Part shown: piece after piece, positions 19,501 through 55,700 of the stretch
How positions within the stretch are numbered: the stretch's first letter is position 1
Layout: every line of letters starts with the position of its first letter
Assembly: GCA_021613535.1 (NCBI GenBank)
Contig: CP075497.1
Location: forward strand, 8,990,001 to 9,054,000
DNA length: 64,000 nucleotides
Reading direction: 5' to 3'
Source: Adineta vaga
Taxonomy: Eukaryota; Animalia; Rotifera
Translations under genes and position numbers: made by a program
The notes under the pieces: model-generated
Databases searched by the model: none
Seen by the model: the letters and a program-made list of their open reading frames with translations, nothing else
What the model was told of the DNA's origin: nothing

Positions 19501-20073
19501 AATTTATATAGTTTTTGAGCAGTTAATACTTGATTTTTGTAATCTTTTATGCGTACATAAGCCATAAATAATGAGCATAGATATTCTTCACTAGTTGGTT
19601 CACGTTTTGTTGCTATTTCATAAAGTCTAACGACTTTGTCATATTGTCGAAGATCTTTATAATATTGAGAGAGAAATGTTAAAGTATTTTCATCGACATT
19701 TGATGCATCACCAGGTGCAGCAGCATGTGTAGGAGTTGAAGCAAGAGTTTCCAATTCATTGACTAAGGCACGTGCTTCATCATGTTTGTCAAGTTTAAGT
19801 AAAACAAGACATTTCAAAGCTTTACATGCAGTAAAATGGGCTTGTTTTTTTAAAAGACGATCGATTTCGGTCAATGCTTTACGATAACTAAACATAGGAT
19901 GAAGAGATTATGAAAGTATTTAAAATGTATATCTACTTATGTATTTCCATAAAATCATAAATAGGACGAAGTCGTCGTTCATTAACTTCCAATCGTGGAT
20001 TCGCAATACGTTGAGAATCATTTTGATGTGATTGTGCTAATGTTCTCGCTGTCAGTGGTATTCCAGATGACAT
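16506..20073 (-). CDS. NAA25: N-terminal acetyltransferase B auxiliary subunit (NAA25/Mdm20)
   Basis: N-terminal EVNERRLRPIYD, TPR region LFMAYVRIKDYKNQ...LYK...YYNWAVIS, LEIKNIQYYSLGY, CYKYGNFLRINE, DTRDF; five long exons. Confidence 0.88.
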
Positions 20074-20365
20074 CTGAAGAAAAGAGAAGAAATTAACAAA
20101 CAATGAGATCTCAGAAATATTTTCTATTCAAGTGTTAGATACAGATATTTGAAGCAAGATACATTTGAATGAGAATAAAAGATAAATAAATGCAAATACA
20201 AGGAGATAAGAATCACACATAAGTTTTTGTTTTTTTTCTGCATTTTTTTAAAATACGGAAGAATTGTTTATATACATAGGTAAAAAAAGATTCTTTTTCC
20301 TCATGCGAATTAATATAACTGATCGATTGTTCATTGCTAAGATTGAATGAGTAATTGATTTGTTT

Positions 20366-21049
20366 TTATGAATTACGAACTTTGCCTGGAACATATTTAT
20401 CATGATCAATTGTTACTTCTTGAAGAAAAACATGAAGTGAACGTTCATTTTGAGCTAATGGATGACCAGCAACCTTATTAATAAATTGTTCGAGTCCTTT
20501 ACGTCGTTCATCAATAAATTCATCTTCAAAAATGCCATCATCACGACGAAAAAATGCAGGCATTTGTCTTTTCCAAGCTTTTGATGGCAATGGTGGAACA
20601 ACAATCTATAAAAATTTCATTGAAAACAAAAGTCTATTTATTTGAAAATATATTTTCTTACTTTACTATCACGTTCAAGTTCTTTACGTAACCATTCAAA
20701 ATCAGAATATCGACGACGAACAGTACATTCTTTTAGACGAAATACCGGTAAATTTGTCTATAAAACAATAATCTTATCGAAATAAAATAGAAAATCTTTC
20801 ATTCAATTTCACCTTCATTCGAACTTCATAATCTGTATATCGTTTACTTGCAAATCCATGTGTTTCAGGATTAAGAACTTCGATTTCAAGAAAATTAGCT
20901 GGAGGATCATAACGATCTTCAAGAGAAATCTATTTAACAAAAAAAAAGAAAGAAAGAAGAAAATGATTCATAAGAAGGAATTAATTGTTTACTGGACGTG
21001 TTGGTAAACGAGCAATTTCTCGACGATTTTCAGATTCAGTTACTGCCAT
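20366..21049 (-). CDS. SNX3: Sorting nexin 3/12 (PX domain only)
   Basis: YDPPANFLEIEV, RYTDYEVRM, TNLPVFRLKECTVRRRYSDFEWLRKELERDSK, IVVPPLPSKAWKRQMP, VAGHPLAQNERSLHVFLQ. Confidence 0.95.
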
Positions 21050-21151
21050 GAATATCTGAAATAAATAATCGATCAAAAAGAAGAAAAAAGTGGAATAAAC
21101 AAACACATCACACATTCATAAATCTAGCATTTATTTTCCTCTTCTATTTTG

Positions 21152-21168
21152 TATATATATATATATAT
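21152..21168. repeat. (TA)n microsatellite
   Basis: Direct reading; similar tracts near 37540 and 59305. Confidence 0.8.
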
Positions 21169-21401
21169 ACATGTGTATGAAGTCATAAAATATCTTTACT
21201 ACTGACCTCTAATGATCGAATATTTCATTGGTTTGAACAATTTGATGAAGAAATAAAATAAAACAAAACGAAAGAGAAGAGGGTCAATCAACGAAACGAA
21301 TACTACTTTCTTGTTGACAAGATTTTATCAAATTATACTGTAAAATTTTCTTTTAAATTGTGATATATTCATCATATTCCATTCATTTGCAATCAAAAAC
21401 A

Positions 21402-22186
21402 ATGTCTACACGTAAAATTCTCATTTTTATATTTCGAAATCTCTTGAAATGTTTATTTCAGGTGTTCAGATATCCATTCGATATTTATTATGGTTTGCAT
21501 ATTCATTACCAGGCTTTGCATTATTTACTTGTGTGGGTTTATCTCTTTTGAAAGATTTCGAAAAATCGACTCGAACACATTGTAATGTGTTTAATTTTCT
21601 TCCATCAATTTCAGCATCGATCGGTGATTGTGAACCACAACGTTATATTTGGCGTTTATGTTTTGCATTAGATAGTATTCCTCGTTATCTTATTGGATAT
21701 TTACAATTGATACGTTTATTAAATCGTCATCATATGGGTTTACCTGAATTGTATCCATTTGTTCAAATTGGAAATAGTTGTATTCATTTTCTTGAATTAA
21801 CTTTTCTTCTCTTATTAACGTATATTTCATCAAATGAAATTAAATGGATACATGAATGTTCATTTATTGGTTTTATGATTTGTTCATTATTACATATGTT
21901 ATTAACTATATTGATAGATTATTTTTGGCCACGAACAATCACTGCTCGTCCAACTGATCAAGAGATAAATGCACGTTCAAAACGATTGAAATGGTTTCTT
22001 ATTAATATTCTTTCGTTTTTTATTTCACTCTATTTCTATTTTCGACATAATAGTTCTTGTGAAGCAAATATCTATTCTATGTATTGCCTTTTTGAATATT
22101 TTGTTGTATTAACTAATATTGCCTATCATTCAGTTGTTATGGACGAATGGGATCAAAATAATGGACAATTACAAATCTTTTTTTAA
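21402..22186 (+). CDS. PGAP2: Post-GPI attachment to proteins factor 2 (Frag1/DRAM/Sfk1 family)
   Basis: THCNVFNFLPSISASIG, PQRYIWR, LLLLTYISSNE, YFYFRHNSSCE, FEYFVVLTNIAYH; short first exon 21402-21411. Confidence 0.92.
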
Positions 22187-22232
22187 AATAAACTAAACAT
22201 AAATCAAGACAGTCCGTATTTTCTTCTAGATA

Positions 22233-23790
22233 ATGGCAGATAATAATGAACCTAGTAAGAAAGAGAAGTTTCGTCAAGAAACTAAAGCAGATAGACGAAT
22301 ACGATTTAAGGAACGTCGACGAATAAAAGCTGAATCGAAACTAGTAGGTTTTCGTCAATCCACACATTATATTGATACGGAATTAACTAATGAATCAATC
22401 TATTATATCGATCCTCAATCACCTGAATTACGTAAAGTTCATCCCTATTTTTTTACATGGATCACACATGCAAAAGAACGTTGGTATGGACGAACGATAG
22501 CCGATGTTTTTCAATATGAATTTCGTCGTTCAATATTAAAACAAAATTTTGAAGATATTTTACGAAATGGTCTTGTACGAATCAATGGTCAATGTATTGA
22601 TAAAGATTATATCATGCAAAATGGTGATAAATTAGAACATTATACACATCGACATGAAGTACCAGTGATTAATCAAAAAATCAATATTCTAATAAATAAT
22701 GAAGATTATTTAGTTATTGATAAACCATGTTCAATACCTGTACATGTACGTTTAATAAAACTTCTCTTTCGAATCTCATAGAACTGTTTTTTAGCCTTGT
22801 GGAAAATATCGATTCAATACTGTATTGGCGATACTTCATTATGAATATCATTTATCCAATATACGTACAGTTCATCGTTTAGATCGAATGACGTCAGGTA
22901 TATTAATTATGGCTAAATCAGCTGCAAAAGCACGTGCGATTGATTTCAATGCTGATCGTACGTCAGCAAATGGTGTTGATAAACTTTATTTATGTCGTGT
23001 TCGTGGTGATTTCCCCTATGTAAATCAAATTGTTCGTGTTGATCAACCCATCGAAACATTTTCATTTCAACTTGGCCTAACGAAAATTGGAGGAAATAAA
23101 CAATGTCAAACTTTGTTTCGTCGTGTAACATTCGAAGAATTACAACAACAAAAAGAACAACATGGAAAATTTATCTTTGATTTAAATAATGAAAATACAG
23201 AAGTAACCATTGATGAATCATTATATAAATATGCAGATCAAGATGAAACGAAAACAAGTCTTATTCTTTGTCGACCATTGAGTGGACGAATGCATCAAAT
23301 TCGTGTTCATTTACAATATTTAGGTTTTCCTATTGTTAATGATCCTCTATATAATGCTCCAAATATATGGGGTTCAACAAATGGACAATATGCACAATAT
23401 GAACATTCAAATGAATATGTTGTCGAGACATTTATTAAATTACATAGTTGTGAATATTGGCTAATGAGTGATATTGAAAATGAAGATGAAAATATAAACG
23501 CCAATGGTAAACGAACTGTAGAAGTGGAAGAACAAACAACTGATGATACTAAACGAGTAAAAACTGAAGATAAAGAAGAAGAAGAAGAAACAACAGCAAC
23601 ACCGACAACGATCGATGTAAACGATGATAATGCTGTTAAAAATTATATTAAAGAACATTGCTTTGAATGTTTGAATCGTTTTCGTGAACCACCATCTGAT
23701 CAACTTGTCATGTATTTACATGCATTACAATATAGAATATCTACTGATGTGACTTTTACTGGTTCATTACCTGATTGGGTACAGATTTAA
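22233..23790 (+). CDS. RPUSD2: RluA-family pseudouridine synthase (RPUSD2-like); 2 exons
   Basis: LRKVHPYFFTW..HAKERW, HRHEVPV, VIDKPCSIPVHPCGKYR, catalytic VHRLDRMTSG, GRMHQIRVHLQYLGFPIVNDPLY, MYLHALQY. Confidence 0.92.
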
Positions 23791-24266
23791 GAAAAGAATT
23801 GAATCCGTTTGTTTTTTTGTTTATGATATTTCTTTTCATAAATAGAAAATAAATCTTACACTAATCAGTATAAAATAAAACAACATTTTCAAATAATTGC
23901 CAATCGATCACTAATAGATGCTCAATCTCTAAATATTAATTTCGAAATAAGATAATACCTTCGACATTGTTTTCATTTGAATGTTGGAAAGAAAAAAGAG
24001 ACCATGTTTGATTAATGTGGTCACTATTATCTTTCTTATCAGTTAATGTAGATGTGGTAGAAACAAACGATGTCATGTCTTTGTCAAAAACATGACATTC
24101 ATAAATTCTCATTATTATTTGCGAGTGACCAACTAAAGTGGTTGGAGAAATATTGTAGAAAAGCATGACAAAAAACTGTAAATTTGAATACTTCCTAAAC
24201 AAATCAAATTGATAAGATGAATAAGAAATCCTGATATTCCGCACAGGCACATAGATATTTTTTCGT

Positions 24267-24273
24267 ATAAAAC
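24267..24273 (+). promoter_or_regulatory. Candidate TATA box of the SRCR gene
   Basis: TATAAAA about 90 nt upstream of the ATG, followed ~30 nt later by an initiator-like CATCATTC. Weak evidence in AT-rich DNA. Confidence 0.35.
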
Positions 24274-24360
24274 GGAATGCATTATGCCAGATCAACAGCA
24301 CATCATTCTCATCTATTCAAAGCAACTGCGTAAACTACAACTACAACAATAACAAAAAAC

Positions 24361-24903
24361 ATGCAAGCTACATTCATTGCCATTGTATTCTTTGCTACTT
24401 ACGGTTTAATCATGGGTAACAGTTTGTATGATCTTGAACCACAAGGTCGAGATGTTGGATTGGCTACTTGTGAAAAAATCTATGGATTAATGGCTTATCC
24501 ACGTATCATCAAGAATATAACAGTTCTTCGAACATCACCACTACGAGTTCGTGTACATCTTTTAGCTCAAGGTCCATCGAAATCGATTCCATTCAGTGTG
24601 GAAGGCATGGTATGCCAAGTTGGATTCGATCAAAATGCTGCTAGTGCAGCTTGTCGATCTCAAAATTTCCATAATGCTGTTATGGTTACCGATATTGCAT
24701 GGCATGAACCACCTGCCAGCTATGGTCAACAATGTATCATGGATACAGAATCATACAAAAGTGTTATTCCATGTGAATATATCTTACATCAATTGAGCTG
24801 TCCACCATCGGCAACTAATTTAGCTGACTGTCGTTTTCCTCCATTATTCAGTCAATCTACAGGATGCAATGCATATACACATGTCGGACTTATTTGTACA
24901 TAA
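24361..24903 (+). CDS. Secreted single SRCR-like domain protein, intronless CDS
   Basis: Signal peptide; GMVCQVGFDQNAASAACRS, LHQLSC....NLADC and CNAYTHVGLIC match scavenger-receptor cysteine-rich spacing. Confidence 0.72.
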   Translation: MQATFIAIVFFATYGLIMGNSLYDLEPQGRDVGLATCEKIYGLMAYPRIIKNITVLRTSPLRVRVHLLAQGPSKSIPFSVEGMVCQVGFDQNAASAACRSQNFHNAVMVTDIAWHEPPASYGQQCIMDTESYKSVIPCEYILHQLSCPPSATNLADCRFPPLFSQSTGCNAYTHVGLICT

Positions 24904-25400
24904 ATATGTGAATTTTTTTTTCTTTTATAAAATCAAATAAAATTTCTTTCTTTCTTATTCTATTCGAGCATGTATAAACATAAATGAATATAGACGGTGT
25001 AGGTCATAAACAGACAGATGAACCGACAACGGCAATCACATTTGTTCATAAATTCGCATCCACCTTCAAGATTGAACGTAAATTAATTTTCGGTGTTAAT
25101 ATATCTTGAAACAACCACTTGGATATTCTTTAAATTTGTTTGAATATTGATTTTTTAAAGATTATTATTTGTTGCAATATATTGTTATAAATTGTCAAAC
25201 AACGCCATCTGTAATGTCAAGTTACAACCATCTTTTCTGTAACCAATATGAAAAACAAAAGCCAAGAAAATAAATAAACAGACAAAATTTTTGTACTTGT
25301 ATAGTTCATCAATTGAAAATTAGTAATTTAGTATTTATTTCATAGAAAATTAAGAGAAATAGTTTTCTTTTTAAGATTGATATAAATTTTCACAGAAAAA

Positions 25401-27053
25401 ATGATGCGAAAAAAGGTAAATGTTGTTTAATAAATGTTTATCTGATCTTATATTGTTTCCATCTAGGTTCTTCTAATGGGCAAAAGTGGCGGTGGAAAAA
25501 CATCTATGCGTTCAATTATTTTTGCTAATTACAGTGCAAAAGATACTCGGCGTCTCGGCGCTACAAGTATAAAATAATTCTTTTGTCTTCTTATGTTTTC
25601 ATTCGACTAAATGATCTGATTTTTTTTGCTTTAGTGGATGTTGAACAATCGTACGTTCGTTTTCTCGGTAATCTTATATTAAATCTATGGGATTGTGGTG
25701 GTCAAGAAGCATTCATGGAATGTTATTTTGCTGCCCAAAAAGATAATATTTTTAAAAATGTAGAAGTTCTTATATATGTATTCGATGTTCAAAGTCAAGA
25801 ATTAGACAAAGTATATATATATATATTTCATCCATAATTAACTCATACGTTTTTTCTTCTAACATCTGTATTTTATTTTAGGATTTACACTATTATCAGT
25901 CCTGTCTAGAATCTATTCTACAACATTCAAGTCATGCTAAAATCTTTTGTCTTGTACACAAAATGGATTTAATACCGGAAGATATGCGTGACACAGTAAG
26001 ATATCTCTTCTATTCTTAATCATCTCATTTAATTGATTCATCAGGTATTTGCTGAACGACAAAATATTCTAACGAATCTATCTAAACCATTGCAATGTTC
26101 ATGTTTTCGAACATCGATTTGGGATGAAACATTGTATAAGGTAAACTGATTGATGAGAATAAATGATAGGAATCATACGATTGATTTTAGGCTTGGTCAC
26201 AAATCGTTTATCAACTGGTGCCAAATGTGAAAGGTTTAGAAAAAACATTAACAAATTTTGCTGAAATTATCGATGCAGATGAAATTTTACTTTTTGAAAA
26301 AGCTACTTTTCTAGTAAAAAAACGTTTTATTTTGAATTTGTTCAAAACAAAGAAACGAATTTAACATTGTTTTAGGTTATTTCACATTGTACACGAAAAC
26401 CTCATCGAGATACGCGACGATTTGAAAAGATAAGTGATATTATAAAACAGTTCAAGTTATCCTGCAGGTAATAAAGAATATATATATATATGTTGAAACT
26501 GAACGAAGAAGATTTAATATTCTAGTAAACTAACTGCCGCATTTCAATCGATGGAAGTACGAAATTCAACATTCGCTTGTTTTATTGAACTATTAACACC
26601 AAATACATATGTTATGGTTGTTATTAGTGATCCATCGATCTGTAAGTTCAAATTCATTTAAGATTAACTACTCGAATCTCTATCGTTTCTATTCCTATCA
26701 CAAAACAATTTTAAAACATACATTACTTATCTTATCTTATCTCAGTTTGTGCTATCGATCAGCATGACATAGATGTTGTTTGACAGAATATTACTGAATG
26801 ATATATTCCACATGTTCGAAGCTTTCATACTTATCCGTTGTTTATTAATCCAGCAAAATCTTACTGGACTAACAAAATAAATAGAGATGATAAGATCATT
26901 CTGTACTCTGGGATATTGATAGAAAATACTATAGAAAAGTAAATTTATTATACGTCTCTATTTTATTTTTTAGCATCGGAAGTCACATTGATGAATATTC
27001 GTAATGCTCGCAAAGTATTTGAAAAACTCGAAAAAGATGTTGCTCGAAATTAA
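25401..27053 (+). CDS. RRAGA: Ras-related GTP-binding protein RagA/B (Gtr1); ~9 exons
   Basis: [88 protein letters not shown]. Confidence 0.96.
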
Positions 27054-52722: not shown

Positions 52723-55700
52723 ATGACGGAAACTCTTGGTAATGAACTAGCGTTCTTTTTTCTTAGTTAAATATTGATAAAATCATTCTTCTTTTTCTTA
52801 TTAAAATAAAAGATTTTTCTCAACTACCGAATAATATCAAAGATTACATATCAACATTACAAAATGATAATAAACGTCACGTCGATGAAGTACAATTGTT
52901 ACAAACACAATTGAATAATTTGACAGCCGTTGTTGATTTTGCTGATTCAACTAAAATCGCCGAAATAGCAGATCTTAGACAAAAACATCAACAGGAACTT
53001 GCAACGATAAATATTCTTATGGAAGGTTTGTTGTTCTTGAAGATGCAAAGAAAAAAACATGATGGATAAATCTTTTTCTTTTTTTGAAGAAACTATTCGT
53101 GATCGAGTCGGTGATGCACGAGATAAATATGATAGTGAAGTGAATACTCTACGACGAAAATTTGAATTACTTCAACAAGAAAATTATGAATTAAAATCTA
53201 AAGTTGCTGATGACAAGTAGTTCGATTGATTTTCAATGAAAAATCATTATTGATTTTTATTTTTAGAGATAGTGTGTTAGCAACTATATCACGATCATTA
53301 CGTGATAAATTAACATCGAATCAATCAACACTAGCACAAGAAAATGAAAATCTTGAAGAAGACATGAGAAAAGCACAAGAAAGTACTTTAATGTTAAAAT
53401 CAGTAATCATTCCATTAGAATCCGAAATTAATCAATTAAAAATTCAATTAAAAGATGCAAAAGATAAAATTTCTGAGCTTGAAGCATTGGTAAAACTCAA
53501 CATTATCATCAAAGAAGACAATTGAACATCTCTACTTCTTCTTTTTTAGCCGCGTGAAGTTAAAATCTCCTTTCCATCCAATGAACAAGACAATCAACAG
53601 TCTTCTGTAAGTACTCAATTTGTTTTATTCAAAAAAACTTTCAAAGTACAATTCGATTTTATCTTTCAAAAAAATCGTTTGCCATATAATGAATATACCG
53701 ACCATGGTTCCGGTACATAGATTAAACTTGATGCATATTTTGTTCGTAAGATTTCATCATTCCAAAAGAAACTTGTCCAAACAGCAACAAAGATAATCGT
53801 TAAATGAAATGTAAATAATAAAAATCGTCCATTGATATCTAAACGATTTCCTTTAACAAAACGTTGATAAAGCCAAATAATTGTCATGAAAAATGTCGTC
53901 GCAATAAACAATGGTGTTATTTGTCCTTCGGTAACTAAATACCAATAATAGGTCGAATTCAATAAAGCTAATGGCCAAAAGCCTTTTGCATTGGTGCTTT
54001 TCGTTTGGGTTGAAACAAATGTACTATTGAAAAAGAGTAGAAAACAAAGAAAATACGGCAGATACCTAAATTATCTCAATGATAAAAAACAAGATGAAGA
54101 ATACGACAAAATGTTGGACATACCACATATAATGACCTAGTTCTTCATCATAAAAATAGAGTAATTCAAATGAATCAATCAAACTTGGTGGATCAAGTTT
54201 TTGCATAATTGGATTTTCACGTACACTTAAATGTAATTGATAACCATTGAGTACTAAACGATGATTAATTGAATCTCCGACTAAATGAATACTTGCACCC
54301 ATGACAAAAATTGTCATTAAAATTGTAAATAAACTTTGATTAACCTTTCTTGGACTTTTCAATATTAAACTTTGTAAAATAAATGGTGTAACAATATTAT
54401 ATATCATATGAAAATAATCGCCAACACTTGGTAAATTCAATGGAAACCATTCAAGTGGAAATATCAACATAGCAATTGGACGACCAAAATCAAGTATCCA
54501 ATTCTCAATAGCAAATAATAACCAAAGATGCCAATGAAATTTTTCTACATGTTGTGGTGTTCGACGATCAGTCATGATTTTTTTGATATTATATTCAATA
54601 ATGAAAATGAATGATATAGAAGAGAAGATTATGTGGCTTTAGTGTACTTTAATACTCGAATTTACAGAGTGAGAAAAGCAAGCAGCTGTGTACGACCTTG
54701 AAATAAAATAAAATATGATAGACGACTAAAAATAATCGAGAAGAAATCTTTTGTTATTCCTTATCATTTATTTTGTCATAGTTTATCTGGTTGAAATTGA
54801 CATTTTCATGAATTTTATTTCAGGAAGATACATCGTCTGATCAACAATCAACAGCAGATAATACAATTCCATCGTATGAACTAGCAATCGTTCGTCTCAA
54901 TGCTTATTGTTCAAAATTAAAAGATCAAGTTCAAGAATTAACAGTACAATTGGATAAAAGTAATAGAAAACATTCTCTTTTTCATGATTTGATTGATTGA
55001 TTGATATTTTTATAAGGTCAAAGCTCTGAAAAACATGCAAATGATGAACGAGATAAATATGTTCAAATCTATGGACATACTCATGATCGTTTTGTAGCAT
55101 TTGAAAAAAAACAATTACAACAAATGCGTCGATTATTAACCATATTAACATCTGATCAACATAAAATTTTAACTGGTACATTTACTTTTATTTTTCTCTT
55201 TATCTATCGTAGACATTTGTATTTTTAGAAGTTTTTACTTCAAAAGAACCGTCTACAAATCAATTAACAACTGATGAATCACAAGAAGTTAAAAGTACAA
55301 ATAATAATGATGATGATAGAAAACTCTATGTTGCACGTTATCGTAAAACCGAAACCGATTGGGAAGAGTTGCTCTCACAGGTTTGTTCTTCGCCAATGAA
55401 AGTTATAGACAAGAAATGTTCGTCTTTCTTTGCCATGATGATAGTTCGATTGCCCCCATCTTTACTTCTATCTTTTTCTTTCCTTCCTTAACAATACAAA
55501 TCGAAACGATAGATCCTAGAAATCTGTCAGAAATAAAGTCGATGAGTAATAATTACGGTCGAAAAGTAAAATGAAAAGAAAAAAAATAAAGTTTTATTTT
55601 ATAATTTTTCAATGTATTTTTTCTTTAGATTAGTCAAATAATGGATTTATCACAAAAATTTTGCGATAAATGTTCACAACAACGTGATGAAAATAACAAA

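Follow-up and report, generated by a model that had tools for sequence, protein, structure and literature searches.

The acceptor AG at positions 22228-22229, between the PGAP2 and RPUSD2 genes of the bdelloid rotifer Adineta vaga, is a real spliced-leader (SL) trans-splice site. The two genes probably constitute a two-gene operon, and operons of this kind have so far not been described in rotifers. All positions refer to the window, the whole 64-kb stretch of DNA that was analyzed, which is located on C6, one of the 6 pieces of a 100.8-Mb genome.

Materials and Methods

The gene models were derived from a reading of the sequence together with RNA contigs, and the exons of PGAP2 and RPUSD2 were searched separately. 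The RNA data are assembled Logan contigs of four public runs (X1, X5, X6, and X16) from four studies, which were mapped on positions 20000-25900 with 21139-21181 skipped as a repeat. These contigs are not reads or single molecules, and overlapping transcripts can yield one contig that covers two genes.

Ten bdelloid genomes were compared: A. vaga, Adineta ricciae (locus L013), A. steineri (L019), Rotaria socialis (L015), R. sordida (L020), and five further assemblies, represented by ENA contigs (L021 and L022) and Logan DNA contigs (L023-L025). The last three retain the PGAP2 intron, being DNA contigs, and were used for synteny only. The junction values of two loci were read by eye. A crude scan of the window was conducted for the stop codon of a long open reading frame (ORF) followed within a gap of ≤130 nt by a pyrimidine tract and an AG ≤10 nt from the first ATG of another long ORF.

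Results

The upstream ORF matches the Pfam family Frag1/DRAM/Sfk1 (PF10277, E 4e-38), and its best non-rotifer relatives are PGAP2 proteins of vertebrates and invertebrates at approximately 40% identity. The downstream gene matches PF00849 (PseudoU_synth_2). Its best non-rotifer relatives are the RPUSD2 proteins of arthropods (30-37% identity), and the N-terminal pattern M-x-D..SKK.K.RQETK is kept among its relatives. With these matches and relatives, the gene names proposed in the initial annotation hold. The upstream gene is an orthologue of PGAP2 within the Frag1 family, the downstream gene is an orthologue of RPUSD2, and the two are unrelated housekeeping genes. The features of the locus, with the evidence for each in parentheses, are as follows.

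21296-21401, plus strand: PGAP2 5' UTR and apparent 5' end of the transcript (X6, X16, and X1 contig ends)
21402-22186, plus strand: PGAP2 coding sequence, with exon 1 at 21402-21411, a GT..AG intron at 21412-21461 (50 nt), and exon 2 at 21462-22186 including the stop (Pfam, relatives, RNA contigs)
22184-22186, plus strand: PGAP2 stop codon TAA (sequence reading)
22187-22192, plus strand: poly(A) signal AATAAA, abutting the PGAP2 stop (sequence reading; counterpart in 10 of 10 bdelloid genomes)
22214-22215, plus strand: apparent 3' end of the PGAP2 mRNA, approximate (X6 contig end, with no poly(A) tail visible)
22216-22229, plus strand: pyrimidine tract GTATTTTCTTCT and acceptor AG at 22228-22229 (sequence reading; tract and AG kept in 10 genomes)
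22230-22232, plus strand: ATA, the three letters that separate the SL from the AUG in the trans-spliced RPUSD2 mRNA and the first to be genome-encoded (X1 record 5)
22233-22235, plus strand: RPUSD2 start codon ATG (sequence reading)
22233-23790, plus strand: RPUSD2, with exon 1 at 22233-22745, a GT..AG intron at 22746-22794 (49 nt), and exon 2 at 22795-23790 including the stop (Pfam, relatives, RNA contigs)

The stop codon of PGAP2 and the ATG of RPUSD2 are 46 nt apart, with both genes on the plus strand (positions 21400-23200 were read). The sequence from the tract through the acceptor is TATTTTCTTCTAG, and 12 of the 14 nt that precede the AG are pyrimidines. The coordinates assigned earlier to the TAA, the AATAAA, the tract with its AG, and the ATA-ATG were found on re-reading to be exact to the base. 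The initial annotation had also stated that there is no room for a promoter; this is correct if only the 46-nt gap is considered, and fails once the body of the PGAP2 gene is included.

Upstream of PGAP2 and on the minus strand is a PX-domain (sorting-nexin-like, PX/SNX) gene with its ATG at 21047-21049, and the divergent region between this gene and the ATG of PGAP2 is 352 nt long. A (TA)n microsatellite at 21152-21172 is part of this region and precedes the apparent 5' end of PGAP2 by approximately 125 nt. Between 18984 and 21049 on the minus strand, the PX gene and a NatB_MDM20-like gene look like two tandem genes about 290 nt apart, with the PX stop near 20366 and the NatB_MDM20-like ATG near 20074; the ends of RNA contigs fall at 20269 and 20052. 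The NCBI models for A. ricciae, R. socialis, A. steineri, and R. sordida present the two as one product of 1288-1308 amino acids. Such fusion models are either a mis-annotation or another co-transcribed pair.

Spliced forms were found in all four runs, and the runs are therefore RNA. Contigs of X1, X6, and X16 lack the intron of PGAP2, and contigs of X1, X5, and X16 lack that of RPUSD2.

The contig that bears on the acceptor is X1 record 5 (1441 nt), which covers 22228-22745 and 22795-23708 and is preceded by nine extra letters, CTTACCAAG. At the joint it reads CTTACCAAGAG followed by ATAATGGCAG: the SL contributes its last 11 letters, attached at 22230, and the AG is common to the leader and the genome. 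At the position of the leader letters the genome reads TTTTCTTCT, which differs from the contig. A chance match of the nine free letters to the SL has odds of approximately 4e-6. The junction was seen in one contig from one of the four runs, with the final 11 leader letters only. Since this contig joins the 3' end of the SL at 22230, the acceptor that the initial annotation had described as unpaired is used for SL trans-splicing, and the 5' UTR of the mature RPUSD2 mRNA is the leader followed by AUA. No copy of CTTACCAAGAG was found anywhere in the 64-kb window. Cis-splicing of the 22228-22229 acceptor to an upstream exon is thus ruled out, as the letters in X1 are those of the SL and have no copy in the window.

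In its published form (PMC3795323, Table 1), the rotifer leader reads GGCTTATTACAACTTACCAAGAG; the exon is 23 nt long, and the letters at the junction are those of this single known rotifer SL. In the A. vaga genome the SL exon is present in 42 copies that read TGCTTATTACAACTTACCAAGAG, against 0 in a backwards-read control. Each of the 42 begins with T where the published leader has its first G. The donor GTAAATA directly follows the exon in 8 of 8 copies examined, and about 80 nt come after it, as expected for SL RNA genes. Copies are located on C1, C2, C4, C5, and C6 (e.g., L001:1502-1680), many of them head-to-head with a distance of about 154 nt between exon starts, and the copies are concentrated in two C5 clusters (9884356-9925969 and 10912931-10934587). 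The junction resembles the known bdelloid SL trans-splicing system in having the same leader, genomic copies of TGCTTATTACAACTTACCAAGAG with a GT donor, and an mRNA junction that ends in CTTACCAAGAG.

For the 3' end of PGAP2, X6 record 18 covers 21296-21411 and 21462-22214, with one unmatched letter beyond. It ends 22 nt past the AATAAA and about 15 nt before the acceptor AG. The poly(A) signal noted earlier is in place, and one PGAP2 contig stops roughly 22 nt after it. No poly(A) tail at 22214 was seen in the PGAP2 contigs, and contigs cannot fix an RNA end.

The two genes are found in a single contig in X16. Record 9 of this run (2387 nt) covers 21296-21411, 21462-22745, and 22795-23780, with both introns out and the junction retained. 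The depth of X16 is zero on the silent stretches 20985-21181 and 23940-24136, and DNA contamination is consequently an unlikely origin for this contig. An RNA that crosses the junction exists, because the contig is spliced and X16 has no depth on silent DNA. In X1, X5, and X6, PGAP2 and RPUSD2 assemble as separate contigs.

Position 21296 is the end of both the X6 and the X16 contigs, and the end of the X1 contig falls at about 21295-21296 by variant offsets. No extra (SL) letters were found at 21296 in the X1, X6, and X16 contigs. Because no AG directly precedes it, 21296 is not an SL acceptor, and it looks like a conventional transcription start of PGAP2.

Single-base differences were observed between runs, for example at 22171 (A>G) and at 22193 (C>A, in the PGAP2 3' UTR just past the AATAAA). 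They look like allelic or strain variants. Such variants break contigs, as in the X1 contig that ends at 22170.

The PGAP2/RPUSD2 pair is kept in all ten bdelloid genomes examined. The order PX on the minus strand, then Frag1 and PseudoU_synth_2 on the plus strand, was found at every locus with enough upstream sequence; the genes beyond RPUSD2 vary among bdelloids (SRCR-like, PPR-like, or RagA). The distances from stop to ATG in the ten genomes are 32, 46, 46, 47, 61, 65, 68, 72, 88, and 107 nt. Relative to the end of the stop codon, the AATAAA of each genome begins at -1 to +21 nt; it abuts or overlaps the stop in most and follows it by ≤21 nt in the others. Pyrimidines make up 11-12 of the 14 nt before the acceptor (10 of 10), and the distance from AG to ATG is exactly 3 nt, again in 10 of 10. 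The remaining spacer sequence is unalignable among the ten, and two of the genomes are GC-rich. Synteny in related genomes had been named as a check on the dicistronic proposal; both the pair and the layout of the junction are kept in all ten bdelloids.

The pattern at the junction exceeds chance, because the same layout recurs in all ten genomes despite differences in the sequence and length of the spacer. Comparison of these sequences indicates that the junction signals are under selection, beyond mere proximity of the genes. In the crude scan of the window, this kind of layout turned up at three sites on the real strands, against zero on two control strands. Besides the PGAP2/RPUSD2 junction, the sites are 55572-55641 (plus strand) and 42944-42921 (minus strand); the latter has a gap of 20 nt without AATAAA and may simply be an intron. 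In R. sordida, a perfect TACTAAC is found 24 nt upstream of the junction AG. A spliced RPUSD2 transcript from a relative (L018) starts 5 nt before the ATG, without SL letters, and bears neither way on leader addition.

RPUSD2 is single-copy in the A. vaga genome. PGAP2 has an ohnologue on C3 (L010, C3:7443344-7447063) with 62% identity, for which the divergent PX/SNX neighbor is kept and RPUSD2 is absent. About 305 nt beyond this ohnologue comes a gene for a RagA-like GTPase; in A. steineri and two ENA assemblies, RagA likewise comes next after RPUSD2. The arrangement suggests that RPUSD2 was lost from the C3 copy after genome duplication. The linkage of PGAP2 to RPUSD2 is not obligatory, because the C3 ohnologue has PGAP2 without RPUSD2, and the PGAP2/RagA-like junction on C3 speaks neither for nor against an operon. 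A third PGAP2-like copy (L011, C3:18876412-18877092, minus strand; 56% identity) contains two TAA codons in frame. They may mark a pseudogene, or they may be within an intron that was read through.

Discussion

The reading that we favor, with some confidence, is that PGAP2 and RPUSD2 form a two-gene, SL-resolved operon in A. vaga. Co-transcription of RPUSD2 from the promoter of PGAP2 appears likely. The initial annotation had called the pair a dicistronic unit: the SL acceptor on the downstream gene is now shown, and the single transcription unit is supported indirectly by the spliced X16 contig that spans both genes, by the apparent SL-free 5' end at 21296 in three runs, and by strong conservation of the pair. 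This conservation is not specific proof of an operon, because the local order is kept more widely and includes the divergent PX gene.

The same data could also be explained by two tightly packed, independent units, which we regard as possible but the less probable account. RPUSD2 would start inside the coding sequence or the 3' UTR of PGAP2, and a short outron would be removed by SL trans-splicing at 22229. An internal PGAP2 promoter, combined with trimming of the outron by the SL, fits all of the contig data equally well. The X16 contig would then be a merger of an overlapping PGAP2 mRNA and RPUSD2 precursor, as a contig across two genes proves no single transcript, and the separate contigs for the two genes in X1, X5, and X6 are what independent units would give. 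According to the 2005 account of Pouchkina-Stantcheva and Tunnacliffe, SL trans-splicing reportedly occurs on at least half of bdelloid mRNAs, and operons were apparently not addressed there; bdelloid SL trans-splicing was tied to operons in no paper that we found. Against an independent promoter for RPUSD2, no 5' end inside PGAP2 was found among the listed contigs, and one of the species has a gap of no more than 32 nt, with the same signals in all ten. A promoter embedded in PGAP2 might have left its mark on synonymous sites. Their conservation among the ten species is 0.73-0.76 at the 3' end of the gene versus 0.6-0.7 elsewhere, with a mid-gene peak of 0.81; in this weak test there is no clear footprint at the 3' end.

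It is highly improbable that the junction-spanning RNA is a non-productive product of PGAP2 read-through or alternative polyadenylation, with the RPUSD2 mRNA arising from another source and the SL contig being minor or chimeric: the SL letters do come from one contig of one run, and a second AATAAA is found inside RPUSD2 at 22322-22327, but the chance agreement of nine letters with the SL is too rare, these letters are placed exactly at the conserved AG with the final AG of the leader overlapping the genomic AG, and the AG, 3 nt, and ATG are invariant in ten genomes.

Under the operon reading, RNA polymerase II would start near 21296, in the divergent region common to the PX/SNX-like gene, and both genes would be transcribed through. 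The AAUAAA after the PGAP2 stop, which is present in the sequence, would direct cleavage and polyadenylation near 22214, an approximate end. The SL snRNP would give its 23-nt leader to the AG at 22228-22229 and produce a capped RPUSD2 5' UTR consisting of the leader and AUA, the step whose product is seen in X1 record 5. The branch point for trans-splicing is normally located about 18-40 nt upstream of the AG. Because only about 15 nt separate the apparent 3' end from the acceptor, the branch point would have to fall within the PGAP2 3' UTR, either at the cleavage site or upstream of it. Cleavage, if it came first, would part the branch point from the acceptor, so that the two reactions would either compete or trans-splicing would precede cleavage. 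Satou et al. made the same argument about competition and order for the operons of Ciona and the SL1-type operons of C. elegans (PMC1488885).

We tentatively propose, with less assurance than the operon itself, that this is an ancient conserved rotifer operon, among the first in Rotifera, and that each precursor either yields PGAP2 mRNA or RPUSD2 mRNA, and not both, or is trans-spliced before cleavage. If this is true, the either/or precursor would constitute a built-in control of the PGAP2/RPUSD2 ratio that has been retained across Adineta and Rotaria.

Operons in Ciona have been recognized by genes on the same strand, a very short distance, an SL on the downstream gene, and unresolved dicistronic RNA (PMC1488885). 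The working criteria for Ciona (PMC1488885) and for chaetognaths (PMC12460157) call for genes on one strand that are <100-250 nt apart, the downstream one with an SL; by these the PGAP2/RPUSD2 pair would count as an operon. Of the general features of SL operons, the pair has the same strand and a short gap, an SL just upstream of the downstream start codon, and conservation of the pair.

By analogy, the PGAP2/RPUSD2 pair would work most like the SL1-type operons of C. elegans, in which intercistronic sequence is scant or absent (PMC1488885, citing Williams et al. 1999), and it would also resemble the operons of Oikopleura. The likeness to the SL1-type operons consists of tandem genes, an upstream AATAAA, a poly(A) site that in A. 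vaga appears to lie nearly on the acceptor, a general leader, and an implied competition. The differences are the other phylum and SL RNA, the approximately 15 nt between the 3' end and the AG, and the fact that the bdelloid case is known from contigs. In Ciona intestinalis and Oikopleura dioica, as here, one type of SL serves monocistronic and operon genes, and the intercistronic distances are tiny (0 nt in Ciona and 23-30 nt in Oikopleura; PMC1488885). The evidence is also of the same kind, namely a downstream SL, unresolved dicistronic RNA (here a junction-spanning contig), and unusual spacing. Unlike the bdelloid pair, in which the AATAAA is present and conserved, the upstream cistrons in these tunicates are mostly without AATAAA. 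The poly(A) site and the AG abut in the Ciona type, whereas the apparent 3' end in A. vaga is about 15 nt before the AG, with some uncertainty in its exact position. In contrast to the SL2-type operons of C. elegans, the pair lacks a stretch of about 100 nt between the cistrons, and there was no sign of a second leader specific to operons. PGAP2/RPUSD2 is not an SL2-type operon.

Conclusions

Operons resolved by an SL are on record for nematodes, tunicates, flatworms, and chaetognaths. In rotifers, operons have been entered as 'ND' (PMC2481426) and were not reported as of 2021 (PMC7986045). We found no paper that describes rotifer operons in the searchable literature, the reach of which excludes most subscription journals.

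Pipelines for bdelloid gene models should allow for junctions of this type. The compact bdelloid junction, with a gap of 32-107 nt, is a system in which the formation of a 3' end and trans-splicing share one short segment of RNA. The conserved, RNA-supported junction in A. vaga would add a phylum to the list of those with SL operons, and it bears on whether trans-splicing predisposes lineages to the evolution of operons.
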